Below, piece after piece: positions 2,455 to 38,300 of a stretch of 64,000 nucleotides of DNA (position 1 is the first letter of the stretch; each line of letters opens with the position of its first letter). The notes beneath the pieces were generated by a model. It had not been told where the DNA came from. It ran no database searches and saw only the letters and a program-made list of their open reading frames with translations. The position numbers and the translations under genes are program-made. Where the stretch lies: the NCBI RefSeq assembly GCF_000150275.1, contig NW_002060968.1, forward strand, positions 167,797 to 231,796, read 5' to 3'. The stretch comes from Trichoplax adhaerens (taxonomy: Eukaryota; Animalia; Placozoa).

Positions 2455-4049
2455 TTAAATCTTGACCATTCTTATACTGCTTTCAACTGGCATGAAACCC
2501 AAATTCTCATTAATTAATAGAACTTTCCCATCAGTATAAAAGCATAGCAACTTTTTACCATCACTTATATTAACTAACAATTGGACTTCGGTCGATTCAC
2601 AATATGGGTGATTTGGGCTATATGGCTCAGAGGAATATATAATAAATTCCCAAAGAATAAAATCTTTGTTTTCTCTATTCCATTTCTTAAAGGTTTCTAT
2701 AACGGTCTTTATATCGTCATTCAGTTTCTGTAAACCACCAATTAATCATTTTAGATCATAAAATGGCCGTGTAAACGACTAAAAGTTCTTATGTTGATCA
2801 ATGGCACTTATTCGAGAGATATTATTACATAGCTAGCAGACTACTACTAAAATCATAACATAAAATATATTTTCGATATACAGAACCATAGAATGATATT
2901 TTGCTATGTTATAATAAGCAGCGTAATAGCTCCAAAAATTTGATTCCATTTACTATATATTTGCAGAATATGATTATAAACCTATTAACCGTCTTTTATA
3001 TTAAATTTAATCTTCCGTAGAAATAATAGTAACAATATATTTACGTACTGTAATAATGAACAGTTGCAGAAAAATTTGACTCCCATAACACAAAATTGAG
3101 CCATTTTTTCGTCTAAATCATTTAGCAAAGGTCTTGTAGCGTCTCTAACTATAACTTGATGATTATTGTAAGACAATAAATAATCGTATATATTCACTGA
3201 TATCGCCATAGTATCTTGTCTTAGTAAGTAAAATACTGCAGATATACCTAACTACTCGGTAGATTATTTTCGTTGTAAACTTACCACAAAGATCAACTCA
3301 TATTCAGATTTCTTTATTTTCTTCATGCACATCATCAATTTGGGATCAGAAGTTAGAATAACCACAGAGTTAGCTATGTCCTCAGATTTGAATATAAATT
3401 GAGCTATGGTTTGATTGATAAATTGGAAATTGATCAGGCTCTGCGTAATAAGAAACTGTTTCAATTCAATTATTAATCTATAGCTGTTAGGAATAGTATT
3501 TACCGCAGCTGGGCTTTTCCTCAAGTTCATCCAATCCTTTAGCATATTTAGCAGTATACGCTGTAAGATGCTTGAAATTAAATTCGTGGTCGCTTTGCGC
3601 TAAGTAATAACCCAGCGAATTAAGATATACTTTTGTTTGGGTGCTGGCAAATTCTGAAACGATATTTTTATCATATCAAGCCACATGTTGCTTAATCAGC
3701 TATTATATTGCAACTGAAATGCACTGAATTCATAAATTCATAATTATACATGTAAGATTTTTCCTAAAAAGTGTAGTATTCAATCTGCCTTCATTTTATA
3801 AAAAGTGCAATTTGAAATGCTGTTGATCATTGTTGACAAGGTATGTTAAATAATACGATTCATCTATATATTTTTAAAGAAATTGAAGGTTACTTGATTA
3901 AAATCAGCAGCAGTAAGAGCAATTTACTATTAATTTAGCCAAATTAGTTACGATTTGCCAAATTAGCTTATCTTTAGAAAATAATGGATCAACTTTTTTG
4001 GGGTACAAACTAAATAGTAAACCAATTTACCTTTAGAAAAATTTTCCAT
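2455..4049 (-). CDS. Paralog A: leaderless beta-trefoil (IL-1/FGF-superfamily-like) protein, 186 aa, 4 exons
   Basis: Exons 4049-4031 (aacaacATG; MENFSK, g|gtaaat), 3653-3504 (phase 1/1), 3403-3285 (phase 1/0) and 2727-2455 (phase 0, TAA). All introns are GT-AG and the 561 nt are fully open: MENFSKEFASTQTKVYLNSLGYYLAQSDHEFNFKHLTAYTAKYAKGLDELEEKPSCAQFIFKSEDIANSVVILTSDPKLMMCMKKIKKSEYELIFVKLNDDIKTVIETFKKWNRENKDFILWEFIIYSSEPYSPNHPYCESTEVQLLVNISDGKKLLCFYTDGKVLLINENLGFMPVESSIRMVKI. The gene model is well supported by its paralogs; the fold call is pattern-based inference. Confidence 0.8.
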
Positions 4050-5984
4050 GTTGTTTAATTTGGTACAGAAAGTAAGCTGATATCAAACCAAGTAAAGTTA
4101 AAGGAGATAGGCGACGAAATTGATCTACTTAACCCGCTAATTAAAATCTTGATTGAAAAGGCAAAATTAGAAAGGAACGACCCTCTATTTATAATAATTT
4201 CATTTCCAAGTATTTCAGTACAAGGCTTTTAAAAGATCAATACGGCAGTAATAGAATAGCATATAATTTTTCAAAATATTTGCGTAACGAAATAATACGC
4301 GTATTATTTTAATAAATAACAAGATATTTTAGAAATTCGTTTGCCTTATTTTAATTTCTTTTCTTCTGGAATAATTTGTATAGTAAACGTAAATAAAGTA
4401 GTTTAGGTGCTAATTTTATTTAATGTTCTAAATATGTCACATACTTGCAAACTACAATGGTCAGAAACAGAGGATATACATCGCATGATAACGTTAAGAT
4501 CGATGATCATTTTAATGACCGACAGCCAATAAATACGGGCGTATGATTATTTCTATTCTACGCTTAACATTGTATCTAATTTAATTGGTTTTATTGAATT
4601 CCTTTTTACGAAGCTGAAAAAAGGCATGTCTATAAAATAATAAAGTTAGGAGAAAAAATCACTGTGAAATGTCGTAATTGTGTCAATATTTCCAAAACTT
4701 AATTGTTTGTAATTAGTCGTAGGCGGTCAATTTTCCCTTTGCGAGTATAACAGCACCTAAAGTTGCTTTAATTTTAATTTAATATAACTATCACTTGATA
4801 CTGAAATAGAATTAGATTAGTATATTTATCCGCATACTGGTTAATCCTATTTTAAGCCAGTAATGAGATCATGATAAGTATAGCAGTGATACAATCCCGA
4901 TTTATGTCAAAAACTGTCGCAAAAATAATGAATTAACACAGACTATGTGAAGAATACTATCTAGCTAGCAGCAAATGGAAAACTGCTGATGATGTATCAA
5001 ACTTCCTCATTAGTAAATAGGAAAATAATTTTCTATAGTCTTAAATGGTCATAGGATAACATCAATTTCATGGTTCGATTGTAAATTAGCTAGATGAATC
5101 ATAACTGACATTAAATATATAGCATATTCAAATTTGGCAAAAAAAGCTATAGGATTTATTATTAGCAGGCGTAGCAGTAAGTTAGTCGGTTACTTTATTT
5201 TCGAAAATAACCTCAATCTGAGAAAGGTATCTAGGGAAGTTAAAAGAATCATTAAATAATAATATAATACAACTCACACTCTATCGTTAATATGGCTAAC
5301 ATTACGTATACTAAAAGCACGTAAAGGAATTTTTTTATCGAGATTAGCATTATCTTCGATATTGCGTACATTTCATCCTTCATTAGATTCTTAGATGAGA
5401 TTTAAAATTAAAGAAAAATGTTTTCATTTAAATTTTCTGCCGCTTTTGGTCTTGTGCAAACAGTTGGCTACCGATGTTTTAAATGGGTAATTACATTTCT
5501 TTTCATCCTTTTAAAACTTTGATCGCTTTATAGGAGAATTATAGATATGTTATTAAAGTTAATGAATGGATTTGCGCAACTAATATGAAGGCATATGGAT
5601 ATATCCTTTAAACGAAGAGAAATAGTGATTGACAGAGAATAAATATAGAGAAAAATGAAGAACGAAAGGAAAGAACTAAATAGGCAAAGATATCGATGAT
5701 GTTGATGGATTTTTTGTTAAATAATTAAATAGTCATGAACAAGCTAATGATTTCAACGCCACTCTCGCTAGATAATCTCCTAGAACCGCTTCTAGTTCAT
5801 AAAGAGCTAGAGGATTCGTAAATATAGACATTGTTTACAGTCAAGTCAACTCAAAATTCATTGGATAGGAAATAAATTAAAAGAGTTGCAATTTAAACTC
5901 CAAATAATTACAAACCTTTTTATAATACTTATGAAAGTTCATCAGGTTCATTTACAGTGAAAGTTAGCTAGATTGATCTATGCA

Positions 5985-6490
5985 TCTACCATAAGAACAA
6001 ATTATATATGTAGTTTATCATTGATGCTATATTTTTGGCTTAAAAGTAGATTAATGCGTATAAGTAAATCATTTATGCTAGGTTTCTTTGCTTAAAGATG
6101 AATTATTGAGGTGAATAATGTAACTAGGATATGGTCAATTGCTAAAAGAACATATAGATCTACAACAGAAACAAATTATTAATGCAAGTAATCACTTATA
6201 TAACTTTTCCTAGCTGATGGAAAAATTGCAAGAGTGAATAATTAGGAACTAGTCTTTATCTAAAGAAACATATAGATCCACAATAAAAAGCTACAGGACT
6301 TGCATTTAATCCTTTTTATGATTTTTTTTTTCTTAAAAATAAACTACAGCGATGAACAATTAGGAAATAATTAATAACAAGACAAATATTTAGATCCACA
6401 ATAATAAACTATGCGTGCAGTTTGATCATTTACGTGATTTTTCCTAGCTTAAAAGCAAACTACAAGGGTGGATAATTGGAAATTGGTCAA
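5985..6490. repeat. Degenerate tandem repeat, ~4 copies of ~120-170 bp, between paralogs A and B
   Basis: Recurring tagatc(c/t)acaa...aa(a/t)ta...tttcctagct...gaataatta(g)gaa blocks near 5985, 6155, 6272 and 6392. Confidence 0.6.
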
Positions 6491-7509
6491 AACTCGTAAC
6501 GTAAGTAAGGCAGGCATCATATAACCGTTACTACATACGAGTATATAAAGTTAATCAGCTTTGGCTGAAATAAGTTAACAGTACCGTCACTATGAATGAT
6601 TTAGTTTGATAGTTAGTATGTGCAATCTTTGCTTTAATAAGTAATATTTTTAATTAGCGGTAATTGTGAACTTGTTTTAAATTAGTTTCTCTCAAAATAT
6701 AATGAAATCTAACATAGTTTACCTAAAAATTGTACAGTAAGTCTATTAAGGCACTAATACAGTTTAACAGAGGACTGTAAGACAAAGTAGGCATTTAAAT
6801 TAGACCCGAAATTTAAAATTTCAATCACACTTTTATTATGTGTACTTCGCAGCATTGAACCATTTTATGATCAATTATAAAAGAAAAACAGAAAGTATTA
6901 CCATGTTTGGAAATTAATTCTAGTATTATGCACAAAAATGCTTCGATTCAACTAAATTTGTAGGCATTTGCTGCCAGTTGAGCAATGTAATTACAAGAAA
7001 TTTAGAGATTTGACTATTAATGTCGGCGCAATAAAATAATGATATTCGATAAAATTTTGTCCACTTTTTATCGTCTGATAGCTTAGGCTACAGGTAGCTA
7101 CGCTAGATAAAAGGAAAATAAATTACAACATTAACAGTATTTTATGGAAAACAACACAGACATTACCGCTTAAAAAATTTTACTCTGAGCCAAATCTTTC
7201 CAGTCAGACCATTCCAGCCTTCTGTTCATTTGCAAGGAACTAGCAGTAAATCTATTTATCTCATAATGGGTGAATTTATTTTATAGAATTGATAATGTAA
7301 ATTTGTAATTAAAATCAAATGTAGATGGTAGAAACTTAAACTATTGCAACGATAATCTACGGCTTCAAGATTTAGTCTGTAATGACCATAAATGAGATGT
7401 AAATGCCGGAAAACTGCAATTCATTGCCTTAATTCCCTGCTGCGAATGATTAAGAGGATATTAGACGCCTCAAGATTTATAGATTAATTGTCATTACTTA
7501 TAGAATGAT

Positions 7510-9082
7510 TTAATCCTCGACCAAATACACTCTACTTTCAGGCGGAAGATAATTATCTTTTAGATTGATAAATTGGACTGTTCCATCAGGATTAAAGCAA
7601 ACGACCTTCTTACTGCCACTTTGTGTTTCGATAAGGTTTAATTCAGTTGATCCATCATCTGATTTGCTGTATTCGAAGATGAATTCCGTGATCAAGTTAA
7701 TGCCAGTTGCTTTTTTTCACTTCCTTCAATTGTTTTGAAAATGATTTCATATCTTCATTGACTTCCTGTATCATAGTAAAAAAATAGAAAGCGATCATTT
7801 AGATTATCTCATTTATGTTATTTCAGCATGAAACTTCCATAATTGGCTTAGATATTTTTTCATTGCATTGCAATATTCTAGTCAAGTACGAAATTAAAAT
7901 TTAAATTTACACGAGCTCTTGATTAAACTGATCTAAATATTATTTTTTATGCAATTTATCTATAGATCAATTAAAAGCATTGAGTGTTAGACTCGCGCAA
8001 ATTATTTCTCTTCTTCTAACTTACCACAAAAAGCAATTCATATTTGTTGCCCTTTATTTCTTTTAAACCAAGTACACGTTTGTTATCAGATAATAAGACA
8101 AGAGCCCAATAGGAATTGTCGTATTCTTCAATTTCAAATTTAGCTGTAAATTGAAAGGACAAAATTTCTGCTTAGTATTTATATGAAATATGTGTAACTT
8201 CCGTCCCAATTTGATTAAAAGTCGAATCTAAAGTACAGTAGAATGATCAATTTCAGATATTTACCAAATTCAGCCTGTCCATCAATGCCATCTAATCCGT
8301 CTATCAGATTAGATTTGTACACAACGAATGGCCCAAGAGTATCCTTTTCACTTTTACTTATTACGTAGCCGCCGATTGATCTCACCAAGAATTTTTTCGG
8401 AGTAACACTGAATCTCTGTACAGCATTGGTATAACCTAAAATTAAAACATTCTTCGTATTAATAACTTATTGCTTTTGAAGTCTACTCTGTTCTCTATTT
8501 TTCTTCATCATTTGATAATGCTACCAATAAGATTAAAAGTTCTTACTCTTGCGAACGATCTTAAAAAAGAGCCTGGAAAATTCAATTATGTTTGCGACAA
8601 TTGTAGCAAAATAATGATGATAATTCTTCCGTTCTGCGTAGAAAAGAAATGGATACTTTAAGAACGAGTTATACAAAGCTATGGCTAATGAGACAACACA
8701 AAATTAAAGGAAGATCAGTTAAATTTCATGATATAGATTGGGACTCATCTTGATTAAATAAAATTGTACTGCTTCCGCTATTTCTGTTTATCTAGTAATA
8801 TCGTACAGTTAAAGCAATCTAAATTTTACTATATTTTTGTAAATATATTAATTTAATTGATTTCTCGTTTAAAACAATTGAAAAGTTTACGCGTATATTG
8901 CATATTTAGTAATTCACTAGAGACATTTAAACACGCAGAAAAAGTATATTTGTCTTCTTCTGTTTTAGACTATCTGAATAGAAGGATAGTTAATTATTAT
9001 TCAGTCGTAGGAGTTAGCTTAAAATTATTAATAATACCTGATATATTATGGATTTACCTTGCAGTACTTGTACGTGGCCCAT
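7510..9082 (-). pseudogene. Paralog B: beta-trefoil IL-1/FGF-like gene with a single +1 frameshift (sequencing error or recent pseudogene); 189 aa if corrected
   Basis: Exons 9082-9058 (MGHVQVLQ, g|gtaaat), 8435-8265 (YTNAVQRFSVTPKKFLVRSIGGYVISKSEKDTLGPFVVYKSNLIDGLDGIDGQAEF), 8143-8025 (119 nt; AKFEIEEYDNSYWALVLLSDNKRVLGLKEIKGNKYELLFV) and 7765-7510 (256 nt). Removing one A from the A7 run at 7711-7717 gives EVNEDMKSFSKQLKEVKKATGINLITEFIFEYSKSDDGSTELNLIETQSGSKKVVCFNPDGTVQFINLKDNYLPPESRVYLVED*, colinear with paralog A. Confidence 0.75.
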
Positions 9083-9547
9083 GGAGATAGAATAGAGTAG
9101 CATTTTTTAATTTAGTGCAATAGGTTAAATTTGGCAATGATCCAAAAATTTGAAGGATACCTGATGATTAAGATTGGATTGGCTTCTAGGAACACTACAA
9201 ATGGAGTTGCAGCCAAATTGAAGAAATGACGATCAGATTGTGCCTTATATATGTTACGGTATATTCAATATACATATTCCAACGACCTTTACATTTAAAG
9301 CGGCATTTTTCTAGTTATCCAAATTTTTGTGAAACAGTTTTATCCTTACCATATTTGGATATCGCTAAGTTGTTCCACCTAAATTCCCAAGGACAAGAGC
9401 AGTCTATTTTAATGGATTGAAACAAAAGACGGATAGAATTGTACTAAGCTGTTAAATTCCATGCATACAGATCTTCTAACGTAAACACTCCGAAAGAAAG
9501 CAAAATTAGGGAGTAACTATAAATTATTATATCTAGAATGGAAATGT

Positions 9548-9795
9548 GTTCTATACATCGAATAAGATTTATCTATGCGTTAGATGTGCGTATGATTATT
9601 AAAATATTACAGAGAACAGGCTCTTTAATAGCTTAATTAAAGTTCTTCTGTGGTAAATACTACACAAGAAAGCAGTATCACGATATTACTATAAATTGTT
9701 ACGTAGATGATTGTAAATTTATTCTATATATATTGCATAAGATCTATCTATGCATCCAATGCGCGTATGATAATCATTGTATTACAGATAATAAC
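9548..9795. repeat. Direct duplication (~70 bp x2) upstream of paralog B
   Basis: ttctatacatcgaataagatttatctatgcgttagatgtgcgtatgat...tattacaga (~9549) versus ttctatatatattgcataagatctatctatgcatccaatgcgcgtatgat...tattacaga (~9722). Confidence 0.6.
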
Positions 9796-12253
9796 CTTAA
9801 TAATTAAAGGTCTACTTAAGATCTTGCATTCTTTCAGTTCCTGAAGAATGAATTCTATAAAATTTAAAAGGCCCCACATTACGCATTCGATTCGTACTAC
9901 TTACTAATATTTCATTCAATCCAACTTACATTATAGAATTCGAGACTGTTGAGCTAACAGCGGTAAATTTGTGAGTAAACAAGAGGATTTCATTCTAAAA
10001 CTATCTCAATACAACCTTGGAAATCGTTAATTGTTGTCATAGCTTTGGTTTACTAAGCTTTTATTGCCACTGAAACTGTTTGTATATGGAATTAAGCAAA
10101 ATTAGGAATCAGAGAGAAGATTGCTGGTGGATTGTCAGTAACCTAATTGAGCACCTGCAGCTCTATCTATAGTTATTAAAATATAAAATGAAAAATTTTG
10201 CAACACTTGCACTACAATAATAAAATATCCAATAGTAACTACATTAATAAAGTCATTAGATTAATTAAGAGTTAATTGATTTCATAACCTAGAGTCTAAT
10301 CCTGTTGCCAAACTTATTACTTTCTTAAGATGGATTTGTTTAAATCTCTATTGATTATAGCTATCAAAATTCCAGCAGCCGCAAAGGGATTACAGCATAC
10401 ACTACATAGATATGATCTTAATCTATGATAGTTTAAACACTCTTTAGTGTATAAGTGTTGGCAGTCTTCAAATATTTAGCAATGTTGAATATCTAAAACG
10501 GACTGTATACGTAAGCAGTTCTCTGTTAATATTTATCAATATCAACTAATGTGCATAAACACTAATACAATGCTAGCGACATTACATGCTATTGGTATAT
10601 TGAACTGATCAGTATGTTTAGTCCTTAATATGGACCCACTGCATTATAATTCTCCCTTAATTATAGCTTGTTTTACAGTTCTCTTCCGCCCTAAAATATC
10701 AACGTAGACTATTGTACTAATTCTCTTTTATCTTACCGTTGCTTTTGTTATCCGATACCAATATGGACTTGCTCACATGTCTTGACCGTATCTATCATTC
10801 CATTGATCAAAATAACATTATCCTTTAACAGCCCATATACCGCGATAATTATTTCATATTGCGCAAATTAATAGCTGTATAACACTACTTTTATCTTTCA
10901 TAGGTGAGTTTGCATTCAAGCTAATGTATATTCATGGATTCAGGGCTATTCTAGTCAACGTGACTATTCCAACCTTAACTTTAGATTACATCATTTGTAA
11001 TAAACAATCTTGTTAACCGCTATTTATACTTCTGGCAATAGTTTTGTCGTTTACTTATTGTGATGCCATCAATTTAATTGTATGCTCTAAATGGCATTGC
11101 TTTTAATTGTCTATTTTACCACAATTAATCAATAGGTTATTATAATACCTTATTCATTATTTTACAGAAAACGCTGATTTACAAGGTCCCAAATCAATTT
11201 TATTAATATCTAAATTTTTCCATTATAGCCCATGATTGGGTTAATGTCTTACGTCTATAAGGAATGATGAAATAGACGTTACAAAGTCCTACCATGCTAT
11301 ACTATTCATTCGAATTCTATTGCTAAACTGATGACAAGGTAGCATTCAAGGTTATAGCTTAGAATTAAGTTATCTACAAAATCTATTTTTAATCAACTGG
11401 AAACAGAATTTTGGATAATATTGTAAATTATATCTGGTAGTTGATAATTAAAAAGGATAAGACGCATAATAAGCCAGGCGCAAGAAAGGCTTAAACAGCA
11501 GTAGTATAACAGCAAACAGTCTACCAAGAAATAGAATGTTATAAAGAAATCAAAACGATAATTAGCTGTCTATAACAATCAGAATATCCAGGTTTAGCCT
11601 GTCGGTTAGCAGAAACTCAACAATGAAACGTTATAATAGATAATATATTCCTTCATGCTTTTGGTTCGACTAAATACAGCAAGCTTGTAGGCTAGAAACT
11701 TTATCCACTGGTGAATAATTCAAAGATAATTATTTATCGATGATGATTTTTCACTTTGGCTATCTTTTCTTGAACCGTAAGTCACATTGATGATATCAGC
11801 GTTAACGTTTTTTCTTCGTGCTTTTTCGTGATATACGTATATAATAAGATTCAGCATGTCAATAATGCATTCGAAAATTCGATTTTGATCATTAGCGCTC
11901 TTGTATTATAGAGCTAACTTTGATATTATTCAGTTAAATTGTTATTTAAAATGAAATTAGGTATAAACTATCATAATCTATTCGAGACTAGATGTAGCTA
12001 TACGTTTTTTAATTTTAAAATAAAGGGTAGGTTATTGTATTTCATTAAAAGTAACAATTAATCTAGAGAACATAATCATTAAACTGGTCGATGACAAATG
12101 CTAGAGTTAACGTCTAGAAATCATTAGATTTAAGCTGTTTTGCAGCCAACAGGTAGTATCATTGCCCTTTGTGTTTTTATGCTCAGAAAAACTGTTTCGG
12201 ATATGAGACTAATTCAATAAATGAATTAAACCTGGATAGAAAGAATTTGCTAT

Positions 12254-13704
12254 TTAAACTGCAGCTAAATTCAATACGCATTGAGTTGCAATTTGACTAA
12301 CAACAAAATCTGATAAATGAGCAGTTGCGTTCTGATCGAAATATACCGAATTTCGAGATGTATGCTGTGATGTATCGCCAACTGTAGAACCATTCACTAA
12401 TAAGCAAACTTTAGTAAAATCAGAATTCGGGCTTGGCGTATATAGCTGGAATAAGCAAATAATATTCATATTAATTTTTTTAATTTCTTTTTCTAAAGCG
12501 TCTTTACTTAGAAATGGAGGTAATTCCTATAAAGAAGCAAAGACGAAAATTTAGATTTAGTATACCAAGAAAAGAAATTTTATTACATGATTTTATAGTT
12601 AATATAGTATAGATTTTTTAACAATCGTTATCTCTTATATTGATTAATCAAATTTTGCTAGACCTCTTTCTTTTCTCAATTATGATTTAATATTATGGGC
12701 AATTTTAATAAGACACACGAACAATAATAGAACAGTATTCGTACATTCTGTCGTTTAACCCAGCCAACCTGTCTTGTAACTTTCAAATAATTATCATTTC
12801 TCTACTAATGCTAGTTTTTGTACTAATATTTTAGGTATTACCATTCCTGTACTGTCTTAGAGACAAGGCTTTTATCAAGTCGTATAACTTTCTTTAGCCG
12901 GTCAGAACTACGACTATAACTACTATTGATGATGATAGCTTCTCCTTATACCAAATAGCAATGTTCTTCTAATTTTTGTAGTACTGTTAGTAAAATTACT
13001 ATTCTGGTTCTTAATTTAGTTTTATTATACACAAAGCATGCTCATATCTCTCATAAAATTAATAATTTTTTATTTAATATGGCTATCGCCACATTGAAGA
13101 TTCCTTATTAAAAATAAATGTATCGCCATAGAATTGAACGTCGGTTTTATTTTTACGATCAGTAAGGTATTATTTTTAACACAAATAGTAGAAAATAATT
13201 TAAAAATATATTATGTTAAAAAACATTATCAGAACTTACTGTAAAGATAATATTAAAATCATCTTTTCCTTTGCGCTCAAGGCCAAAGACTGCTCTTCGA
13301 TCAGATCCCAAAGTAATATAGCTATAAGTATTATCTATGTCCCAAACCTGGTAACGAGCTGATGATTGGAATTTGTAAAGTAAATAATCCTTTCAATATT
13401 AAGATTTTGAATTTGCATTCATACAGTGTATGATTTCCATCTAGATATAACGCCTGTAATTACCGTATCTCTATCTGTTTTACTATATCGCCTTTAGATC
13501 ACCATAAACTGAAAGTGAAGATTTAAGAGATTTGATTATTCTATCAACAGTTCTTACTTTCCGCTAAATTTTGATCCACTTCATCGAAGGATTTGGTATA
13601 AATCGCACTATAAATAATGTACCCATGATCAACGTGAGTATTGCTAGTGCAAGCTATAAATTGACCGGAATTTTCTAATGCGATTCCTTCATATTTAGGA
13701 GTCC
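12254..13704 (-). CDS. Paralog C: beta-trefoil IL-1/FGF-like protein, three core exons (first exon uncertain)
   Basis: Exons 13704-13558 (phase 1/1; TPKYEGIALENSGQFIACTSNTHVDHGYIIYSAIYTKSFDEVDQNLAE), 13358-13240 (119 nt, phase 1/0; RYQVWDIDNTYSYITLGSDRRAVFGLERKGKDDFNIIFT) and 12526-12254 (273 nt, same length as in A; ELPPFLSKDALEKEIKKINMNIICLFQLY...TQCVLNLAAV*). Candidate phase-1 start exons at 15264-15228 (MPTEEDNLPSTT) or 16650-16623 (MNRIVSSKT). Confidence 0.75.
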
Positions 13705-16700
13705 CTAGAATAATTCACATGGTAGAAGCAAAACATATGATATCCACGTTAATAAAGTTTGATTATGACAATGGAGCAGTTATTAATGGCTATAGCAAAA
13801 TAAAAATTAAATTATACGTTGATTAGGTACAGCAGCCGCTTCGCCTTTGGCTGAATGCCAAATTGAAAACATTTAAATATAGCTGTTCATTAAATACCCT
13901 TTAAGCTGGTTATTATATGCAAGTATTTAAAGTAGCCTCGCTACTATATAACTCTTAAAATCATAGATATAGAATGCGATGCTGTCTATCTCTATAATTA
14001 AAAGTACTGTACTTCGATCAAGATATTAGCGTGGAGTGAGAATGCTAATTTGTGCTAGACTGAATCCTACAAGCACATAGTCTAGTGCTTATGTAATACA
14101 TGATTATTAATCAAAGATATCGCGACAAAGCCTTTTGATAAAATTAATATTACTGCAGTTTAGGCTACAAAGCACTTTTTACAAGTATGTTGTTGCTACT
14201 GAAAGAAGCTATAAATTTTTTCTAGTCTAATTTGACTTGATAAAATGATTCTTAATCTGCTATAATTCGATTTTATACTGTTCTAGTATGGTAGTATTTC
14301 GTTGATATTATAAGACATTTTAATATTATGGCAATTTACAAGCATTAATGAATCTAGTGGTAGGCCATAAGTTATTAGTAGATTTCTCGATCTTACTAAT
14401 TTCAACTTCTATCAAACAGCATTTGATAGAGTGAGCAAGCACGGCAATATTCGGTCAATTTAGTGTAGATAAATACAGTCTATTGATGGCTTATCACTCT
14501 ATCATGATTCATCATATACGAAACTGTTATGATGGCATTTCAACGACAACTAAAAGAATGGTGGCCCAAAGATTATTCATTTGTAGACTAACCCTTGATA
14601 TCTTCACAACTACATCCAATAAGATACTGCTTGGTTGAACGAAAAAGTTATATCCCGATATATGTGCGCACACCAATAGACAAAATAAGATTCTTGATAG
14701 CTTTATAACAACATGCGTTCTACAAAATAAGCCTATTATAGCACTTTAGCTACCAACAGGATCAATATTGACTGTATTTTTACCATTTTTAATTTGAAGT
14801 ATGTTAGAGACAGCGACCGGACTTTTTGTGTTATAGACTATTATCAATATTATTGTATTTTATTAATATTCAGTCGCTTAGCGGTAGTGTACGGTTAAAT
14901 TAGACAGATGATAGCAGTGTTCTATTGGGCAACTACAAGATTTATTAGCTAAACGTAAAGAAAATGGTCGTTATGTTAAAATTTGATATAACTGAGGATA
15001 AAAGTGTACATTTAATCAACAGGCTTGACTTGGGCTTTAGTCGCGTTGTATTTTGTTATTACTTGATTATAATGTAATACAGTATCTGACACATCAATTT
15101 CCGGACTAATTCTATTCCCTTTCACAATCGCCGGCGGAACTTTAAATTTTTAAACTGACGAAATTAAATTATTTTGGCATAATTGAGGAACATTTCCCGT
15201 TTCTAGTCAAGCAATAATATCACCTACAAGTTGTTGATGGTAGATTGTCTTCTTCTGTCGGCATATTGGGTAAGAATTTGAAGTTTTCGGAAAGAAAATG
15301 CCACCACCGTTATGTTTGAACTACCTCCTTTAAATAAACGGTAAACTTCAAATATATGGGATTTCGTTATCGTTTGATTTTATAGACATATGCTGATGAT
15401 TTTCTCTTCAAATAATAACATGCATAATCGATTGTACCATTACAGGAGAAAAGAAATATCAACAATAGTTGTAGTGGTAATTGCTTTTATTTATTATAGA
15501 CGATAGAAGAATGTGATTTGCTTTGCATTGTTGGCCGCCAGCGTGTGGTAGCATTGGCTATAGAGCGATTTACCTTTAACATAAGCAAGTATATTCTGTA
15601 AAATGTCGTAGTTATCATAAGCGTTGATTCATTTCTACTTCAATTATTGGAATCATTCCAGATACTATTGCATTAACGATCGGCTTAGTTGTGACGTTAT
15701 GACAATCAGCGTTGAACCTTCTATCACTTTTTGAAGGTAAAAGGCCTTATTAATGTAGGAAAGACTATCGATAGAGCTGTACGGTGCAGTATGCTCTGAA
15801 GGTTTTCATTTTATTACTTCATTAAAGATAGATAATAATTTCCAGTTAATGATGAGTTCCATGTACTATGATTCAATGCAAAATGGTAATTAGCTGACGT
15901 AATTGGTGTATTCGGCATTCTACAAAGGTGATTACTTAATTATATTTTTTTCATTGTATGCATAATAGATCAAACTTTCTAAAGTACAAATTTATTTGCA
16001 TCGTTTATCCTAATAGGATTATCGAAGAACGATTGATGACGAAATACGAGGGTGTGAGTGACATATTTATTTTCCCGTGAAATTAATTATTTACAAAGTA
16101 TTCTTTGTGCTTATCATCGCTGATAGTTGTTTAATATTTATGCTATGACAATAATTAATCAAATGCCTGTATTCAAGTTGGACGGTAAACTACTCACCAT
16201 TGCACAGCTTTTCACATGTCTATTACATATGTTTCTGCTTTATGATAGGTTTAGATTCTTTGCTAAACATAAATCAATAATTATTGTATTGCATTAATGC
16301 CAGAAGCGATTTCAAATGTCATGTTAAATGAACTTAAGATAAATTTCATTTGGTTTTGTTCAACTTCATGAAGAATATCTGTAAAGTAAAAAGTAAATCT
16401 AATCTTTAATACGAATTCCTTCGTATTAACGCTTTTTCCCTTCTAGTAACATTAACGGAACCATAAATTTATCATGGAGAAACTGTATTTAAAAAATATT
16501 CTATTAAACTTTTCCTGACTTAACGCAGTATCTAACATCACCTACAGAGTGTTGGCTGATCGCCACTTCTTGAATTGCGCTTATTTTGGTCTTCTGACTT
16601 TTTCTTATTAGGTTTTTAATACCGGTTTTGGAGGATACAATCCGGTTCATTCTTACGACTTGCTGCAGCTCAAACTTCCTACTTGCGATGCTACATTACA

Positions 16701-17742
16701 AATAAAATTCAAGCTACTCGATGTTTGTTTTTATAAAAAATATTATATAACAACCTAAAGGCTGTATTTTATTATCGGAGAAAAGATAATATTTGCCAGA
16801 TGTAGATTAGCAATTAGTTTTCATACATAACTGACGATAAAAGAAAATAATTTAGTTTATATTGTCAACCAATATGATGAGGTGGCACTTGCTTTATGCT
16901 AACATTGTTTTAGCGCCAATGAGAACTATTTTATGTAATCATTTAGTTACGGCTAATGTTGGTTGATTAATCTATTTTATTTTCGGCACTATTCGACGTT
17001 ACACATTATCAAATAACGATTGATCTACAAGTTCAGCTGTCCTCGCTGAAATCTGTCGTTACTTTATACATAAAATGAAGACCAAGAGTGCTAGATAATG
17101 AGATATTTGGTAATATACTCTGAAAATTTTAATTTTACGACCCAAATAAAGACAGATTGCAAATTTTACAGTCATAAATTCCAAGTGTAGAGAAATTAAG
17201 TGCTAACTAATCAAACTCTGACTCCATTATTCATAATTATTATGTTCTATACTTTATAAAGACCTTTACTCATTTACTGTCATTACTTTTTGCACAATTT
17301 TAAACCCTGCTTAAATTATAATAGATCGAACGTTGACTCATATGCACTAATAACATCTTTATAGGAATATCTAAACATTGGAAAAGCTCATTCGTAGCAA
17401 AGAATCACGTAGGAATAGGATTACAGCAAGGTTTTTATGTTTTGCAGTGAATAAGATTATCTTTAGAATATATGTCAATATTTTATGCTTGCAGTTGCAA
17501 TCCAAATCTACTTGATATATATTCATTCAATGATAGTTGAACTTCTCTACGCTATTGAGAGGGGAAAGAATTCCCTAATAAACAATTTTTCTCGCATCGA
17601 ATAATTCTCAATATATTTATCCTTACTTTGCTTCACGCTGCAATAATTGACGTGATTTCATCAATATTTATTAGCCATTTCCATCCTAAGAGCAATTGCT
17701 AATGATTCAGTATGATTAATTAACAAGATATAATAGTATGAA

Positions 17743-18015
17743 AGGAATGAATTAGAGTAGTATACTACCAGTTCCCGAGTACACGCAATTATCATCCAGA
17801 ATGTATTTTATTGGTATTATTAATTTTTGGCTTTGGGTAATTAAGCAGGGATGTAAAGGTATAAGAATTGTCGAGAGTGTTAAGAAATAATTCGGAATGC
17901 AAACAGTTTTCCTCGATATCTCTCATCTTACTATTCGATGACCGGTAAAAATATTTTTGCTAGCAATATCACGTAGCATAAGATATCAGTATTACGAGAG
18001 ATCAATCTGATGAAA
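17743..18015 (-). pseudogene. Decayed exon-like segment, duplicate of 22693-22990
   Basis: Shares ordered blocks with 22693-22990 (aggaatgaattag, gcaattatcat, ttaatt..tggcttt, gtaatta..cag.gat, tatcagta). Both copies are preceded on the minus strand by a pyrimidine-rich AG acceptor. All frames contain stops. Confidence 0.4.
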
Positions 18016-19100
18016 AGAAAAGAAATAACATTTTATTGTTATACTTTCGGAAGTTTTTATTAATCCTTTAAGGAATAAAAATAGCGATGGAACAACAAAA
18101 TTCTTGTAGTAAAAATGATCATAATCTCCTTGATTTGTCAATAGGTAGTCTTCCATCTTATTAAGATAGAGCATTAAATCTAAATATTTATTATATACGT
18201 CAAGACTAAAGGTGAAAACTGGTAAATTTATTTTTATTGATTTTTCATCTTAAAGTAACAGCATAATATATTTAATTTCTACTAATAACTAGCTCTAAGC
18301 TTTAATTTTCCTAATATCAAGATTTTAAATTACCATGTTACATTGGAACTGACGATGCAATTGAGATTTTTGGGCTAGCACCTTTGAAATAATGAATAAA
18401 TTATCTAGAGTATAAAGAAAGCTTTAGGATGTACACAACTTATCTCGTAACTGCTATATGCAATTCTGCTTCACGGCTCGTAGGACTACCTTCACTTGGC
18501 CTAATGCGTAAAATAAGACAAAGTATCTACAAGAGACCACTAAATTCCAACGAATGCAAATAAATGGAAATTCATTTGAATTATTATACCTATTTTAGTC
18601 GTTATTAACTGTTTATTCCATAGAAATAATCATGGGAGAAAAAATTTTGCAAATAGAATAACTGTAATCTTTTAGACCTGACGATAGCCGATTTTCGAAT
18701 TTCGTTATGATAGAGCTTACTACAGTGTATCTTTAATGCTAGAAATTTTTCAAATAGGCACTCGAAGTAAAATTGATAAATTTTATTAATTTTTGTAGGC
18801 GAAATTACTGGCAATACAGATACATTTAAAGTGATACTAACAACATACTAACGACTGATTTTTTTCTTAATATGTACTTGATTTTATGATTTAAATTATT
18901 GTATTTTATCAGAATTATCGGAAAATATCTAGGAAAATCGTTCCATTCGGGAATAGTACATAGGTTGTGGTTGCAGTCAAGAAAATAATTGGAGCATTGA
19001 ATGATATTTATCAGGGTAGCACTGAACTAAGCTGTCTATATAGCTATAGCATTAACTGAACTTGATAACAGAAACAGGCTTTGTAGACAGATATCGTATT

Positions 19101-21844
19101 TTATACGCTGACTTTAGCTAAATTTAATATACACTGAGTTGGAAGATAACCTATAGGACAATTTACTAGATGAGCACATACTTTATCGCCATCGTTCATA
19201 TTTTCATCATTATCTACATGATCATCAAAACAAACCGTATACTGGATTGACTTATCACCAATTTTTTTTGCCACTCGTAAGCACAACCTTTGAAAATTAG
19301 CGTTACTAGAAACCAAATATAAATCGAATAGGCAAACAAAATTCTTGTCGTTGTTAATTTTCTGGATCTCCTTCAAAACCTCTTTTACACTCGTTTTATT
19401 CAGACGCTGGCGAAAAGCAAGTGTAATATAATTCAGGATGCTAAATGATTCATTTCATTTATTTATTAGAATAAATTATTTAGAGTAGCTGATGCTCTTA
19501 TTCTCATTATTACAGTATCCTATCTAAAGCTTACTACTACCAATTCTTTTATTGGCCTAGTTTACAAATAGCTATTACAGGAAATATAAATTGCATGTCG
19601 ACTCTGTTTTGCTGTCAATAAGCTAACACTCTGTTCAATTTATATAACTGCTATTTAAATATGAAATCGAAGAAGTCTTACTCTAGTCTACGTACCCTAA
19701 ATACTACATCATAATCATCATCTGATCCACCTTTTTTATGTTTAAGACAAAAGATGGCTGGTGGTATTTCTTTATCGGCAATAGATCCAAAAGTAATGCA
19801 ACTTTTCCATGGTGTTTCTTGCATGGATTTATCGTCGACTAGGAATATTTTCGAAATATGGTAACGAGCTGGTAATTAGTAATAGAGAAGAATAATTAGT
19901 GTGATGAGAATGTCAGTTATATACTTTGTACGGATTCATCAGCTTTATAAATATAATTCTGAGATGGTATAACTGTAAGAATTAATTTATGGCTAGGAAT
20001 AAATGATATTTTCAAGCAGTATATTCAACTACCATTATAATACTTACGAAACGATAGCTTTTATGAGTATCTGATATGATATTAATAGCATTTTTCCTAA
20101 CTTTTATACGGTCATTAAAGCCAACTTTTACTGAATTTGACAATATATATGCGTATAATTGTATATAAGTACTACAAGTTGCTTTACGTAATTTTACCTT
20201 AACCGATACACAGCACGAAGTTGATAAACTCATTAATATTAAGCTATGTGTAGATAACCAGTTACTTCTAATTACTATTTAGTATTATATAATTAGCTTA
20301 AATCACTACAAAAATATATCTACTTCTATTAGTTCAGTTATATCAAATATTAAAGTATGTCCAGATGATAATAGCATAGTGATATAAAGAAACTGAATTA
20401 TTCTATCTTTAAGTCTTACTTGAATCAATATTGGCATCCAAATAATCGAAGCGTTTGACATACTTTCCGTGGTAAATACCGTAGGTTCCATTTACTTTCT
20501 CATTGCTGTATGCAATAAATTTACTTGAATTTTGCAAAAGGACTTCCGCATGTTGAGATTTATCTTGGATAGATCGTTGGGATAAATATCAATATGATAT
20601 CAGATTAAAAAATAGATTGGTACAAATGTTATCTGTCAATCGGAAAAGCAAGGTGGTGGTCGATTATTGTGATATGTGTACAGCCTAGCCATTCAGATGT
20701 GTCTCGATCTCGAATCTACAATAGTTGGTTATTACTACATTACAGTACATTTTCAAATGATCATCTATGATATGCTCGTATGTCGGTATTTTAAGTATAC
20801 GTACTACTGCGTCTAGTTTGTAAGAGTATTTAAAAGACCTGAAATCTGAGGTATACTTGTTGCAGTTAAAAAGACATGGAGTAAAAGCTGCATGTCTATG
20901 ATTGAAGCTATAGCTACCATGACCCTTTTTACTTGATGTTATTCGTTGAATTAAAATTTAAAAGTATGCTAAGCTGAATACCGCAAGTGAACTGGTATTT
21001 TCCGGACACCTTTAGAATCTAAGACTAATAAGATTAACTAATTTGACGGTAGTTTACGAGAATAACATAGCAATATTTTAATAGGCATTGTCCGGCTTTC
21101 TAGCATAATAACGGAACAAATATCGATGGATTTAAGTCTTAATTATTGTACAATAGCTTAAATTTATTTCTACTTTGATTGTAGAATTTGTTAGCAATGG
21201 AAGATGCTTAGTTTTATGGAATTATACCAATACGTAAGGATCTGTTGATCAATCATAATTATCAGAAAATGAATTTGAGGTAGATTGGAATATATTATCG
21301 TCAGTTCATCTTTGAGTTTTATTGTACAGCCAAATTGTTATTTTATTGCAATTTATTATTTAATACGAATAATTCCAGATTATTACTGATATTCTTTCAA
21401 TGTTTCTAAAGAACTATAAATTTATCTTGGAAAAATTAAAATCATTTTATTCTATTTTATAATTTTTCCTGTTAAAATTAATATCTAATATAACCTACAA
21501 CTTAATGATTTTGATAATGGCTGCTCTGGCAAGTCCTCGTCTTCTGATCTATGAGAGGTAGAGTCTAATCTTTCATCGGGGACTCCCGCTAGGAAATACA
21601 ACAACATTCTTATAGACTACCACGGGCAACTCCTTCATATCATTTAATTCTTACATTTTTTTTTCAATGTTGTTGACAGAACTGTAAATTTATCTTGGAG
21701 TAGCTAAAATAATCTTAATATATTTTACAAATACCTTCCGTTTAAGTTTAATATATTATATTCCTTACAAGCAGATGTATTTTCCAACGTATTTCCGATA
21801 GAATCTGGTGTGTCATCAGAAGTTTGAGTAGGTGAAGAGGACAT
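19101..21844 (-). CDS. Paralog D: beta-trefoil IL-1/FGF-like protein with acidic N-terminal extension, ~262 aa, 5 exons
   Basis: Core exons 20563-20420 (phase 1/1; KSQHAEVLLQNSSKFIAYSNEKVNGTYGIYHGKYVKRFDYLDANIDS), 19868-19696 (phase 1/0; RYHISKIFLVDDKSMQETPWKSCITFGSIADKEIPPAIFCLKHKKGGSDDDYDVVFR) and 19406-19101 (RLNKTSVKEVLKEIQKINNDKNFVCLFDLY...YLPTQCILNLAKVSV*). Phase-compatible upstream exons 21844-21769 (MSSSPTQTSDDTPDSIGNTLENTSA) and 21588-21499 (GVPDERLDSTSHRSEDEDLPEQPLSKSLS) are less certain than the core. Confidence 0.72.
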
Positions 21845-31326: not shown

Positions 31327-32362
31327 CTTGTTACTAGTCCATAACCAAAGATACCCAAACGTCATCCTTGTTATCGCCGCTGCTAAACAATCATAACTAA
31401 TCACTAATTTCAGAAACATTTTTATTTTATAAAATGCTATATTTAAATCGTGACAAATAAACCTGAAATTTTCAAAATTTTTCATACTAGACTAGGAATA
31501 CATTATGCAAAAATTTGCTCTTTTAGAATATCCAAAGTTATCGGCACCTTCGTAACATGTAAAATTTTAAAATGGATCTAATATAAATATATATACAAGC
31601 CGTGTTATTTACATACTTGTAGCAAGTGTAAAGGTATAAAAACTTATGCCTGGCCAACATATCCACAGTAGTATATTACAAATAATAAAGGTCCATGTAC
31701 ATTACAATATCTGTTACATTTCATTTATAAATACTGTGTCATTAAACGTATTAATTAAATAGGCGTATGTAAATGAGATACCAGTAATACAGGTGCATAA
31801 AAACTAAATTTAACATTTTCAAAATAAGAAAATGATTTACCATTAGTACCAGTATAGAGAACTAAAACATAAAAGGAATAAATTCGTAAGTCGGAAAATC
31901 AAACTATTAGCTATAACAACCTTTGGTTGCAGGATAATTTGCGTCACAAAAAAGACTATTTGACAATTTTTCGTTTATGAGTACAACTTTAAACATAAAT
32001 TTCTCAATATTACATTTACTATTTTAGTGCAGATCTGAATCCCCGATAAATCCCTATTTACTAATGATAATAGAGCACAAACGCTTCCTTACATCTACTA
32101 ACATAATCCTTAATATCATAGAAATATGCTCTCTTAAATGTAACTGAAATCTAATTACACTAGTTACATTGGCATGATCAAAATAAGCCATTCATTACGT
32201 AAGGTAGATTACAAATCTATTAAGCAAGAAATTTCAATTTCCATTTTTATCTCAGCCTATCTACGGATCTAATCCACCGATTCTAAATGAAACAGTTCTG
32301 CTATTGCTAAAAATTATTTTCGAACTCAATCTCCGGATAAAACAAATCCTAAGTTAGTAAGC

Positions 32363-35300
32363 TCATTTGCTTTGGCTATTCTTCTTATTATTATCTTTAA
32401 TAATTTCATAGAGAACGAGTGCAACAAATACATCCATTGGATCCAGTAAACCACGTTGCAAGTATTTCGGTATTGTGCTATGGGCATTTTCAAATCCTAA
32501 CTTATTTAAAACCCAATCGATGCCGACAGGGTCAGTTCTTTCTCCTGCCCATGACAGAAATTGAATCTTCGGGTCTAGATACCAGTGACTGCAAGTAAAT
32601 CGACGCATTTGCAGCATTTTTAATGTGTTCTCTGCTCGCTCAAATTTTCTCTCAAAATTTCGATGGGAAACAAATCGCGGCTTATCAGCTTCTAATTGCA
32701 TATACATATTACAGCAATCAGTGAAACATGAAATACAGCGCTACAATAAAAATGCAATAAATTGTACTGCATAAATTAGCGTTGAATTTGTATACCTTGA
32801 TCATCTTCTCCCTTGATATAATTATTAATCATTTGATGCAGAAAGATAAAATGATTAACGTCTTGTGAAAGCCAAATACTATTCTCAAACGTGATATTAC
32901 ATGAGGTATCAATCGTCATTTCTCGGTCATTTTCTAAACAAAAAAATTAATACGATGAAGTTACATATCCATTATAATTAATCATCAAATACTCTTTGTA
33001 CTAGTATCAAATAAAATCGCTAATATAATAAAATCATCTTGCATACCCCCATCCAGATCTCGCAATGTCAGTGCTGGAATGGTATGATTTGTTTCTAATG
33101 TAAGTTTAGTTTCCGGAAACGAAAAGACAGTTTCTACATCCAATTCATAGCGTTCATCTGGCATTAGATATATCCCTCGTAATCTTGATGGTCGCATTTT
33201 ACTACTCATAGTCCCAAATTTTCGCTCTCCAAATCCGCCCATTTGAGGACTGTAGTGCCTTCTCGTAGCACTATCAGCAATTGGTGTTACACAGGCGTAT
33301 ACTAACCAATCTTGTACATTCCCGTGATTCGGTGGACGTTGCTTAAATCGAGTGATGCGACAAACTTTGGCCGTCTGTGATACGCCAGCCAAAGAAGGCA
33401 GAAAAGGTAGGCGATGCATTTTACTATCATCACGTGTAACCTTACTGTTGCCTATATTTACATCTAAACTATGCTTTACACGAGCAATTACTTCTTTATC
33501 ACGTGAAAAGGAAATTGAAGTTACAAAACTTGCTGCAGGTCGTTGCAAATAGAAAAGACTCCACACTTTCTCCGTAAAATTAAGGCCATCAAAGCATGCT
33601 AAAGATATTAAACTTCCATATAAGGAAAAATTTCCTTCAAGATTAACTTTAGCAAGATCCAAGGGAGGAAGGCCAGATTTAAATATAATCTTATTTAACA
33701 CTCTCAACGGTCGAATCCAGTGATGAACAGAGTTTTCCAATGATTGTTCACGATTGCTTGAATATATCGAACTACCGCGCATACGTGATTGACGTCGTCC
33801 TCCTAATGCTCGCTTGCTACTCCGTTGCTGTTTTCTAAAGCATTCTTCAAGTTTAAAGATAATCTTAATGAGATTTGTTGGGCTCGATTGCGAGATCGCT
33901 GCATATAATTCACACCATTGCACATTGCCATGAAGGGTAATTGATGGGGATTCACTGAATTTAATACCCATAGAGCCGATTGAACTAAGTTCTGGATCTT
34001 GCGTGGTAACGATGTTCCATTTATCATATAGGCTAGCCTTAAGATTAGTTAAGTGCGCCATAATGGTAGGAGTACTCATATAATCTAATCTCGCATCTAA
34101 TAATAGCAAACTTAGGGAAATCGCATTTTGCGGCTGCCAATCATAATTGTCACGAAATTGCCCTATTCGTTAAAAAGTTGAATATCGATCATTATACTGT
34201 GCATACAATGAATCTAATTTGAAAATTTGAAATTATCGCTACGTAATTGGGAATAGTAAATTTTTTGTTTAAACCCTTACCAGACACCGAGAATTCCTGT
34301 AATTCTATCAAACCGCCAACGGTACCACTTCGAGAATCTATAGAGCTCCTACCGATTGCGATCTGTGCGTCCAGATTATTGTAACCAGAGTGTCCAACAT
34401 ACAGACACGTGCGACATTTAACTTCATTTGTACTCCAACTAAACACAAATTGGAAAATTTCAGTGTAATACTTAATATAATATCTTGCCGGTTAACTTAC
34501 TTTGTAGGTCCCATAATGCTGCCCATATTTGCGGTTACGACCAACTGCTGTAAATTACAAGCTAATACAAACATTGAGTCATAATCGGTTATACTTTCTG
34601 ATTTCTGCCTTTCAATAGCTGGAACTGTTAACTTAAATTCATTACTATGTTGCCTTTCGAACATTGCTTCCTTGCCATCTTGAAAGAAGCAAAGCACAAC
34701 AATAATCAAACTGCGTTGAATCACCCATTAAATTATCGACAAAATACTAACCAGCCCAATTACTCTGAGGAGTTTCACTGGATCGTGTCTGCGTGTTGCT
34801 GCTGTCACCGACATTACCCAAAAACAGTCGTCTGGCAATAGAATTTCGATACCAAGCTTTGGGAACATCAAGAATTTCAGATAATCCTCTCATATCGTAG
34901 TTGAATTCAGCGCTTTTAATATCGAATAATCCTTGAATACAAAAGAGAAATTATGATGCATATAATAGTTAGTACTTTATTACATACAAAAAAACTGCAA
35001 TAATAATTAATTACCTGCGGTGTGATATTTAACACGAAATTTGTTAGCAGATGGATCCGAAGCTCGACCAAGGTCAGTAATATCAAATTTATTACTGGAC
35101 CGTTCGTTTTGAGATATTATAATCCGCTTTCTGGTAATGCTAACTTTTGCCGATTCCACATGCAAACTTAGAGAATCTCTGCCATCAGTATTGCTACGCG
35201 ACGATGCAAAACTATTATTCCTAGCACGTCCTCCTGGTTGATGCTGACGACCATATGGATGAAATATAGAAAATGAAAAGCGTTCAAGATATCCCGTAAA

Positions 35301-38300
35301 AGATACTGTTGAGCAAGTTCCATGAGGAATATTTTCGGACAGCGATGCTACAATAATAGACATTTAATCGTAATTCATAAAATTTATTTGTAACACTTGG
35401 CACCCTAATATAGGCGATTATTACTAAAAATACTCTTAATTTCTAACCTGATGAATTTCCAGATGATACAGCGCAGCTTTCCAAGCCAATATAAGGAGCC
35501 ATGCTGACTTTCTTCTCTGAATGACTGGTAAACATCAAATCTAACGATGGCAGTTGTAATAAGCACTCTACTCTCGACACAGGCATGCAACTTAAACGAA
35601 TATCGAGGGGTTCGACGCGAACATATACAAATGCATTAACCGGAAAAGAGGTTATATTAGATAAACTCGTTCTGTTTGCTGTCAGGACAGAATTTTCATC
35701 TTCTTCACTCGAAATACTTTCACGTGAGTGTATATCTTGATTGTAAAACATATCAACTGAACTACGCCGAGATAATATTTCTTCAGCTGGAGTTAAATCT
35801 CCAAGTGCTCCTTCAAGAAAGTCAACCAAACTAGGTGTTAAGATGATTTCATCAGCTAAAGAATGAAGGTAGAGCCATAAATGTAAAGTAGCAACAGTTT
35901 TCAACTTTGCAGCTGAAGTTCCAAAAGACTCAGAGCCAGTATCCGCGGATAAACTACTTGGCTAAAAATATGAATTTAGTTTATTTCATATTATTTCGAG
36001 AGAATTGGTATATTATTTAGGTAGTAGTCATGGGGAAAAATAAGTTAAATCAATTACCAGCCGATAACGATTGTATAACTATTGTCATTTCGTAGCATTC
36101 TCGTATTACCTGATACTGCTTATTAGATTCATCTTCATCCTTTTGATTAAGCGTAGTATAGCGTAATTTTATATCGATGTCTGGCATCATTAATATTGTG
36201 CTTTCAAGTTGAGCGGACGAAACAGATCCAATAGCCTTCCTAGACCTCCATTTACTCGACTTTAGATGATCTCTTGTATGCGATCTTTTACGTATCATTC
36301 TAGTAATGACATTAAAGTTTTAAAGTTAAGCGTACTTTTTCATTAAATGAAATTCGTAAATTATTGATCTAATTTTTCCGTACTCATCTGCTTGTTTCAT
36401 AGACTGACTATATAGGGTACATTTTCCTGTATCGGTCTGAAGTACAACATCGAGTTCAAAGTCAAATTTCATATCAGTGGATGATTTGGATTGAGTAAAA
36501 GATCCGGCTACGGATGGAGCTTGGTCGCCTTCGTCATAGCTTAAGTAACATGCCTAAATAATTAAATGAAGGCTGTATGTTAATAACTTCTTACTAAATT
36601 AAGTATGAACACTTGCTGGATATTAGTATTGCTACCGGATCTTCCTTTATTGATACTTTTTTCTTCTTATTTTGAGAATCTGTAGTATCCGGCTGTATTT
36701 CAATAACAGTATCGTTGCCAGATGCTCCAGTTACTACATGACCCGTAAAGTCTTCGTTGCGATTCGTTTCCAACATTTGAGATAACGGTTTACCACTTTC
36801 ACGTTCAATGTCACCATCATAGCCAGACGCTAGCAAACTCATATGTTTAGTTCGCCGGTAGTTAAATATTTTTTTGCCAACTAAATTATTGCATTGTATA
36901 TACAAGATTAGGTCACGAAACTCTGAAATAGAAGTTCAAAGATACTGTGGAATTATCATATCTGTATTACCTGAAAGCCTTCTTCGGTGCTTCTGTATCT
37001 TGGCCGTATCACCTCCTGTTTGACGTTCGAGAGTTGACATTCGATTTCTTCTTTTTTTTTCAAAATCTTTACTTAAATGTGAATGCCGAAAATCTTCGTC
37101 AATTATAGATTGATTAGCTTCAGTATCCCTAAATAGGAGATAATATTATAGTAAGATTAATTCATTATGCTTGCTCAGCTGCGAACATAATAAGCAATTT
37201 ACCATATAGTATGTCTCGGTCAACAGTAATTATTGTTTAAATTGTCAATACAAATAGAAACCTCAATTTATTGATCTTCGAAATTTCTGATCGTTTTTTG
37301 TGATCGCCATAACTTTGCTTAATTTTGATTCTATCCGGAAACTTTTCTGCGTCAGCGATTCTATAGTCAAAATTCTCTTCACTGCTAGTGGAATTATTAA
37401 TATTTCTTTGTCGTCTACTATAAGGTACCAAATGCGAAAGTACATTAGTAACAAGATTTCTAACTTATATCAGCTTAGGAGATGCCTTCTATAAGGTGAA
37501 ACACTTGAAATTATCGTCATATAAAATATATTATGCGTACCGCTCATGTGATATACCCATAATATATTTATCCATAACATCATAGTCTTCGTATCGGTCA
37601 TCAAACGTTTCGAATGAGTCTACAAATTCATCGCTCTCATCAGTGATTGAACCAATGTCTGAAGTTTCATCTGCTTCGTTCATTAATGTTAAAGCATCTC
37701 CAAGAAGTGATAAGTAGCGGCCAATATCTTGGTCAAAGCTCATGTTGATACCAAAGATCCTCCAACAAAATACAACAGACCATTTACCAGCACTTTGATG
37801 AGATTCCCCTTAATAATAATTTTTGCAATCAGATACGACTCTTTCGGTTCCAATGTAAAAAGAACGTAATTTTACCTGATTTATATCGTTCCGACTTTGA
37901 ACAGCACTCATAAGTTCCATCAGGAACAATACCTAGAAGAATGTAATGAAAATCGGAAAATCAGCTTGGTAATACTGCAAGATATATTTACTTACTATTA
38001 ACGTACATGAATTCATAATACAATCTTGATTCAGATTAGGAGCCCAAAATTTGGAATCTGTTCCCATACTATCAGTAAAGCGAATGCATAATGCTTTAAA
38101 ATGCCCTCGAACAGCCAAAGATGTACTATTACATGCTGTAATCAGCATGCTATCAACAGTACATAATAACGCGGGATTGGATTCTACGTAATAGAATAAG
38201 TAATCAAGCTAGATAAGTATTTGCCACTATTTTGTAAAAAGTAAACCATCTATTTTTGCTGGTATTACCGTAATCGCGACTTCGCAAAAATGGGTCAGCA

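Follow-up and report, generated by a model that had tools for sequence, protein, structure and literature searches.

A tandem array of small, leaderless beta-trefoil genes in the placozoan Trichoplax adhaerens, with a cytokine identity that is unproven

The described proteins closest to the subject of this study are the beta-trefoils of the IL-1 superfamily, the FGFs (including the leaderless FGF1/2 and FGF11-14) and the trefoil lectins and inhibitors that fungi and bivalves make without a leader (ricin-B-like CNL/MPL, MytiLec-type, cospin/clitocypin). IL-1-type trefoil cytokines are found throughout cnidarians and bilaterians and in no sponge or ctenophore, the main text of that survey being silent on placozoans (PMC13736523). 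Their invertebrate form, IL-1anc, is marked by (F/L)ES in beta-9, in most cases a PDZ domain at the N-terminus and two central introns whose phasing is conserved (Fontenla-Iglesias et al. 2026, PMC13736523), as well as by linkage to GCC2, ESD, TRAF3 or IL-1R-like genes (PMC13736523). The ancestral Fgf gene possessed two introns in its core (PMC11733497), and the origin of the FGF receptor FGFR is placed in Eumetazoa in PMC7260276, which attributes this to Bertrand et al. 2014. True Toll-like receptors are reported to be absent in placozoans (PMC6321704). Here we describe a tandem array of beta-trefoil genes in Trichoplax adhaerens, four members of which lie in a stretch of 64,000 nucleotides on scaffold C1389 (the window; RefSeq assembly GCF_000150275.1, contig NW_002060968.1, positions 167,797 to 231,796), an AT-rich eukaryotic DNA of ~30% GC. 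A first-pass annotation, made from the letters of this window only, had proposed four hidden genes for IL-1/FGF-type cytokines in a placozoan-like animal; the source is indeed a placozoan.

The reading that we find most plausible, though well short of certain, is that of a placozoan-restricted family of small (~170-260 aa), acidic, leaderless single-domain beta-trefoils, serving as soluble binding modules and encoded in a birth-and-death array. No assignment to the IL-1, FGF, ricin-B lectin, fascin, MIR, Kunitz or inhibitor families is possible, and a cytokine identity is unproven. The genome searched was the 105.6 Mb assembly. Gene models were rebuilt from coordinates and their frames checked by joining the exons, which gave four genes in the window:

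2455..4049, minus strand: gene A (TRIADDRAFT_61702, XP_002117704.1, B3SBQ8), 186 aa; exons 4031-4049, 3504-3653, 3285-3403 and 2455-2727; intron phases 1/1/0
7510..9082, minus strand: gene B; exons 9058-9082, 8547-8633, 8265-8435, 8025-8143 and 7510-7765; intron phases 1/1/1/0
12254..15264, minus strand: gene C (XP_002117706.1, B3SBR0), 191 aa; exons 15228-15264, 13558-13704, 13240-13358 and 12254-12526; intron phases 1/1/0
19101..21844, minus strand: gene D (RDD39292.1, TrispH2_008893, in Trichoplax sp. H2), 262 aa; exons 21769-21844, 21499-21588, 20420-20563, 19696-19868 and 19101-19406; intron phases 1/1/1/0

Every intron of these genes is bounded by GT and AG, and the rebuilt models bear out the multi-exon, minus-strand genes that had been proposed. 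The spliced translations of A and C are identical to XP_002117704.1 and XP_002117706.1, respectively, and that of D equals the H2 protein except for P29S; D further possesses an acidic, Ser/Asp/Glu-rich N-terminal extension of ~55 aa before its trefoil core. The phase pattern 1/1/0, originally given for all four genes, holds for A, for C and around the trefoil core in general, whereas B and D, which have an additional phase-1 intron at the 5' end and thus an extra 5' exon, read 1/1/1/0. A recount confirmed a middle exon of 119 nt in A, B and C, a last exon of 273 nt in A and C, and middle-exon identities of 14/39 (36%) between A and B and 10/39 between B and C. The genes were not unannotated, since A, C and D correspond to existing public models and, at the position orthologous to B, a gene of 218 residues is present in the H2 annotation. 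In the databases A, C, D and this 218-residue gene are labelled 'uncharacterized' or 'hypothetical' and carry no Pfam domain. Literature searches with six protein and gene accessions (A, its H2 orthologue, C, and the paralogs E and TRIADDRAFT_52713 introduced below) found no paper naming them in the collection searched, and a search for Trichoplax together with beta-trefoil found no relevant paper. In the 5' part of gene D, a short motif (ccaagataaat...) occurs three times, at ~20560, 21420 and 21700, upstream of or at exon boundaries, which fits duplicated exon-intron modules.

Transcription and splicing are directly supported for A and B. In Logan contigs from three independent studies (runs X5, X6 and X9, presumed to be RNA, which is a guess), compared over 6,000 letters covering both genes, the introns of A are skipped exactly at 2727|3285, 3403|3504 and 3653|4031 and the core introns of B at 7764|8024 and 8143|8265; the B contigs of three runs extend 5' beyond 8435 into the upstream exon, and the gene A transcript has its 5' end near 4147. 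The contigs without introns, the CT..AC intron ends and a genome without an intron-less copy are together best explained by spliced mRNA, and a retrocopy as source of such contigs is unlikely, since the genome holds none. Spliced contigs thus span all three predicted junctions of A and the two core junctions of B. The four genes are real. One X5 contig with spliced A extends 1,023 nt past the 3' end of the gene (window <2440), representing either a long 3' untranslated region or overlap with another transcript.

The same contigs bear on the reading frame of gene B, for which the proposed open frame fails in this assembly as a result of the following feature:

7711-7717, minus strand: A7 homopolymer in the last exon of gene B, with the resulting premature TAA at 7697-7699

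With this A7 the assembly's coding sequence of B has a length of 1 mod 3 and its translation ends after ...KKSNWH. The X6 contig keeps A7, whereas the X5 and X9 contigs carry an A6 form, linked to single-nucleotide polymorphisms at 7551, 7553 and 7557, in which the frame is intact; the Trichoplax sp. H2 genome shows a 1-nt gap in this exon, the one-base-shorter form. The presence of A7 in the assembly and X6 against A6 in X5, X9 and H2 indicates an intact and a frameshifted version of B, belonging to two haplotypes or lineages; transcripts of both are seen.

The array is larger than the four genes initially recognized. Exon-wise tblastn and hidden Markov model searches of the flanks gave 11 tandem paralogs on C1389:120,480-189,640 (~69 kb), seven of which lie upstream of A-D, all on the minus strand (C1389:120480-165270), and one further paralog lies elsewhere in the genome:

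C1389 ~149.5, 156.1 and 164.7 kb, minus strand: genes E, F and G
C1389 ~120.5, 130.1, 138.5 and 143.3 kb, minus strand: four more divergent members
Scaffold C1414: unlinked paralog TRIADDRAFT_52713

The seven upstream members share the family motifs, and the middle exon of each ends in ...[IV]F[VL] followed by GT. BLAST hardly connects the A/B type with the C/D type, but they have a common exon structure, and profile alignment (hhalign probability 98.6%, E 1.1e-15, 163 columns) shows the two subtypes to be homologous. With family copies diverged to 19-40% identity over 11 genes, the fast-diverging tandem array that had been claimed is upheld. Gene G (C1389:164745-165270) has a TAG in frame, which only the use of an internal acceptor at 164969 would avoid. 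A small contig, C977:1-2154, appears to duplicate gene F, with ~99% protein identity over the last exon and is probably an unmerged allelic contig of this gene.

The restriction to placozoans is suggested by homology searches. A last-exon profile compared with 1.84 billion representative proteins matched only Trichoplax proteins, three short metagenome open reading frames and, over short lengths, long repeat proteins; word-index searches starting from A and from the profile of the family found nothing beyond the family itself. AT-rich ENA metagenome contigs (ERZ27263980, ERZ23499115) of ~2 kb and ~32% GC carry family members in the same three-exon layout, and their base composition and layout probably point to another placozoan in those samples.

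That the proteins adopt the proposed beta-trefoil fold is borne out by AlphaFold2 models of A (predicted local distance difference test (pLDDT) 82.5, predicted template modelling score (pTM) 0.80) and C (64.2 and 0.66), both beta-trefoils, and by matches to PDB structures, all of which are trefoils. All twelve strand segments predicted in A from the letters are beta-strands in its model. A helix lies between the second and third repeat (14 residues in A, 102-115; the equivalent in C is 109-118). A hydrophobicity criterion identified no hydrophobic N-terminal segment in the family proteins, in agreement with the claimed lack of a signal peptide, and in A, C and E just 12-20 residues precede the trefoil. 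The family proteins are acidic (isoelectric point 4.6-6.7).

The fold by itself does not lead to the cytokines. In the structure search, the highest Z scores were obtained for Symfoil, an FGF1-derived design (13.0), a ricin-type carbohydrate-binding module (12.9), the heads of Tpp80, Cry35 and BinA (12.4-12.8) and HA33 (12.6), followed by FGF1 (12.2; root-mean-square deviation (rmsd) 2.6 over 122 residues), fascin (12.0), IL-18 (11.9; rmsd 3.8 over 141 residues), IP3R/MIR (11.5) and FGF4, FGF10 and FGF23 (10.8-11.2). This ranking is flat, with ~140 trefoil chains within ~2 Z units and no non-trefoil matches; because FGF1 and IL-18 stand level with the ricin-type, HA33, Bin/Cry and fascin trefoils, the step from trefoil to cytokine is unsupported. 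A comparison of the family profile with PDB sequences gave no meaningful match, and the ESM Atlas entry for the A sequence yielded neither a model nor a usable neighbour.

It could still be argued that the array is a true, highly diverged IL-1/FGF lineage of leaderless ligands, released by a non-classical route, possibly under caspase control, and signalling through surface receptors. Gene structure is in its favour, as FGF and IL-1 genes have two introns in the trefoil core and so do the genes described here, in phases 1 and 0. As a lead in the same direction, the middle exon of FGF genes in vertebrates measures 104 nt, which would imply the same phases, 1 then 0. The array moreover shares with IL-1 and IL-1anc the beta-trefoil, the lack of a signal peptide, a tandem lineage-specific expansion, introns in the trefoil core and Asp-rich candidate caspase motifs. 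Sequence comparisons speak against such a lineage. A Pfam search with every exon and 9 full family proteins gave no match at all: none to IL1 (PF00340) at E<=10, none to FGF (PF00167), which was also without match in the six-frame genome, and none in the family proteins to PDZ, fascin, MIR or Ricin_B_lectin. The IL1 search of the six-frame genome was likewise without match, but its controls were silent too, which makes it a weak search. In contrast to IL-1anc, the family alignments do not contain (F/L)ES in beta-9, the strand that opens the third repeat, which reads [IV]-[WCT]-x-F, their sole x-E-S being the P-x-E-S before the last strand. Nor is the array linked to the genes searched for in this respect, ESD and TIR (GCC2 and TRAF3 were not searched for): the only ESD-type esterase match lies at C1414:4.29 Mb, off the array scaffold, and C1389 gave no TIR match. 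The IL-18, IL-33 and IL-1 chains rank no higher than lectin, toxin or fascin trefoils. Compared with the FGFs, the array lacks PF00167, has an additional helix between the second and third repeats and encodes acidic proteins, unlike the heparin-binding FGFs. The reported placement of FGFR origin in Eumetazoa and absence of true Toll-like receptors in placozoans point in the same direction. We therefore regard a true IL-1/FGF lineage as quite unlikely, and the original cytokine claim is not sustained.

One conserved motif deserves separate consideration. The alignments, a DxxD scan and the metagenome relatives define a conserved acidic motif in a loop, [GS][LF]D[EGY][VLI]D, encoded where exon 2 ends; it is the best-conserved stretch of the N-terminal third of the proteins:

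3523..3543, minus strand: acidic loop motif of gene A (GLDELEE)
13574-13585, minus strand: acidic loop motif of gene C (DEVD)

DEVD is found in C, E and the unlinked paralog and DELD in two metagenome relatives, while B has DGID, D has DYLD, A has DELE and F has EEVN. In the model of A the motif occupies residues 45-51, a loop with a short helix that follows the first long hairpin. DxxD is a motif of the caspase-3/7 type, and caspases inactivate IL-33 by a cleavage that splits its trefoil. Cleavage at this candidate caspase site would split the trefoil, but an acidic turn with a purely structural role is just as possible. In the IL-1 superfamily the corresponding motifs lie in the pro-region, whereas the conserved DxxD of the array lies inside the trefoil and not upstream of it, a further difference from an IL-1-type ligand. 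A more specific proposal, in which the array would be a placozoan branch of leaderless IL-1/FGF trefoil cytokines and the internal DxxD (DEVD) loop a caspase switch tying cell death to ligand release or inactivation, appears to us very improbable.

Two other explanations do not invoke signalling. The proteins might remain inside the cell throughout, as structural or regulatory trefoils in the manner of fascin, hisactophilin or FHF; fascin lies within the flat structural ranking, the proteins lack any Pfam fascin or MIR match, and housekeeping regulators rarely form 11-gene tandem arrays with 19-40% identity and a frameshifted member, so that we consider this unlikely. They might also be cytoplasmic defence proteins as in fungi and bivalves, i.e. 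leaderless trefoils that serve as lectins, toxin-targeting modules or protease inhibitors, are stored in cells and are directed against microbes, symbionts or predators. This option is possible, if doubtful: the ricin-type, HA33 and toxin-head trefoils are among the structural matches, while in comparison with the fungal and bivalve proteins the array is without internal repeat conservation, sugar-site motifs and Pfam match.

Several points also weigh against our own reading of soluble binding modules. No QxW occurs in the family alignment and the three repeats have no common sugar-binding motif, by which the lectin option is weakened. The AlphaFold2 models were built from an input alignment of 9 sequences only. 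C and D are supported as transcribed genes by public gene models, the contig comparison having covered A and B. The H1 and H2 orthologues are ~99-100% identical, so that selection (the ratio of nonsynonymous to synonymous substitution rates, dN/dS) is not measurable from them. Function, finally, is deduced from fold, gene organisation and divergence pattern only.

With these points in mind, the favoured family of soluble binding modules can be pictured as follows. The array would evolve by birth and death, a mode known from recognition and defence families, and its products would most likely be soluble binding modules, either cytosolic or released by a non-classical route. The variable hairpins and loops would bind diverse targets, while a few conserved surface motifs (G-L-D-E-V-D and P-P-E-S) would contact a shared partner or a processing enzyme. 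Among possible functions, we rate a defence lectin, toxin or inhibitor-like binder slightly ahead of an intracellular regulator and both ahead of a secreted IL-1/FGF-like signal, with a sizeable share left to other roles.

Elsewhere in the window, large open reading frames at ~32360-46480 on the minus strand match the N, M and C families of BLTP1 in Pfam, which bears out the neighbouring gene named in the first-pass annotation. An inverted repeat at 92-857, with arms of ~280 nt (92-367 and 585-857) that are 88-95% complementary, flanks an assembly gap of Ns at ~507-555 and could stem from misassembly or mark the termini of a mobile element.

What emerges is an expressed, apparently placozoan-restricted, 12-member family of leaderless trefoils without Pfam domain. 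If the family acts in signalling or defence, it would offer a handle on how trefoils are used where an animal lacks true Toll-like receptors and FGFR, and a placozoan cytokine branch, if true, would mean that this signalling class arose below Eumetazoa. Should the family have no relation to the cytokines, it would caution against identifying IL-1 from leaderless trefoils in a tandem cluster.

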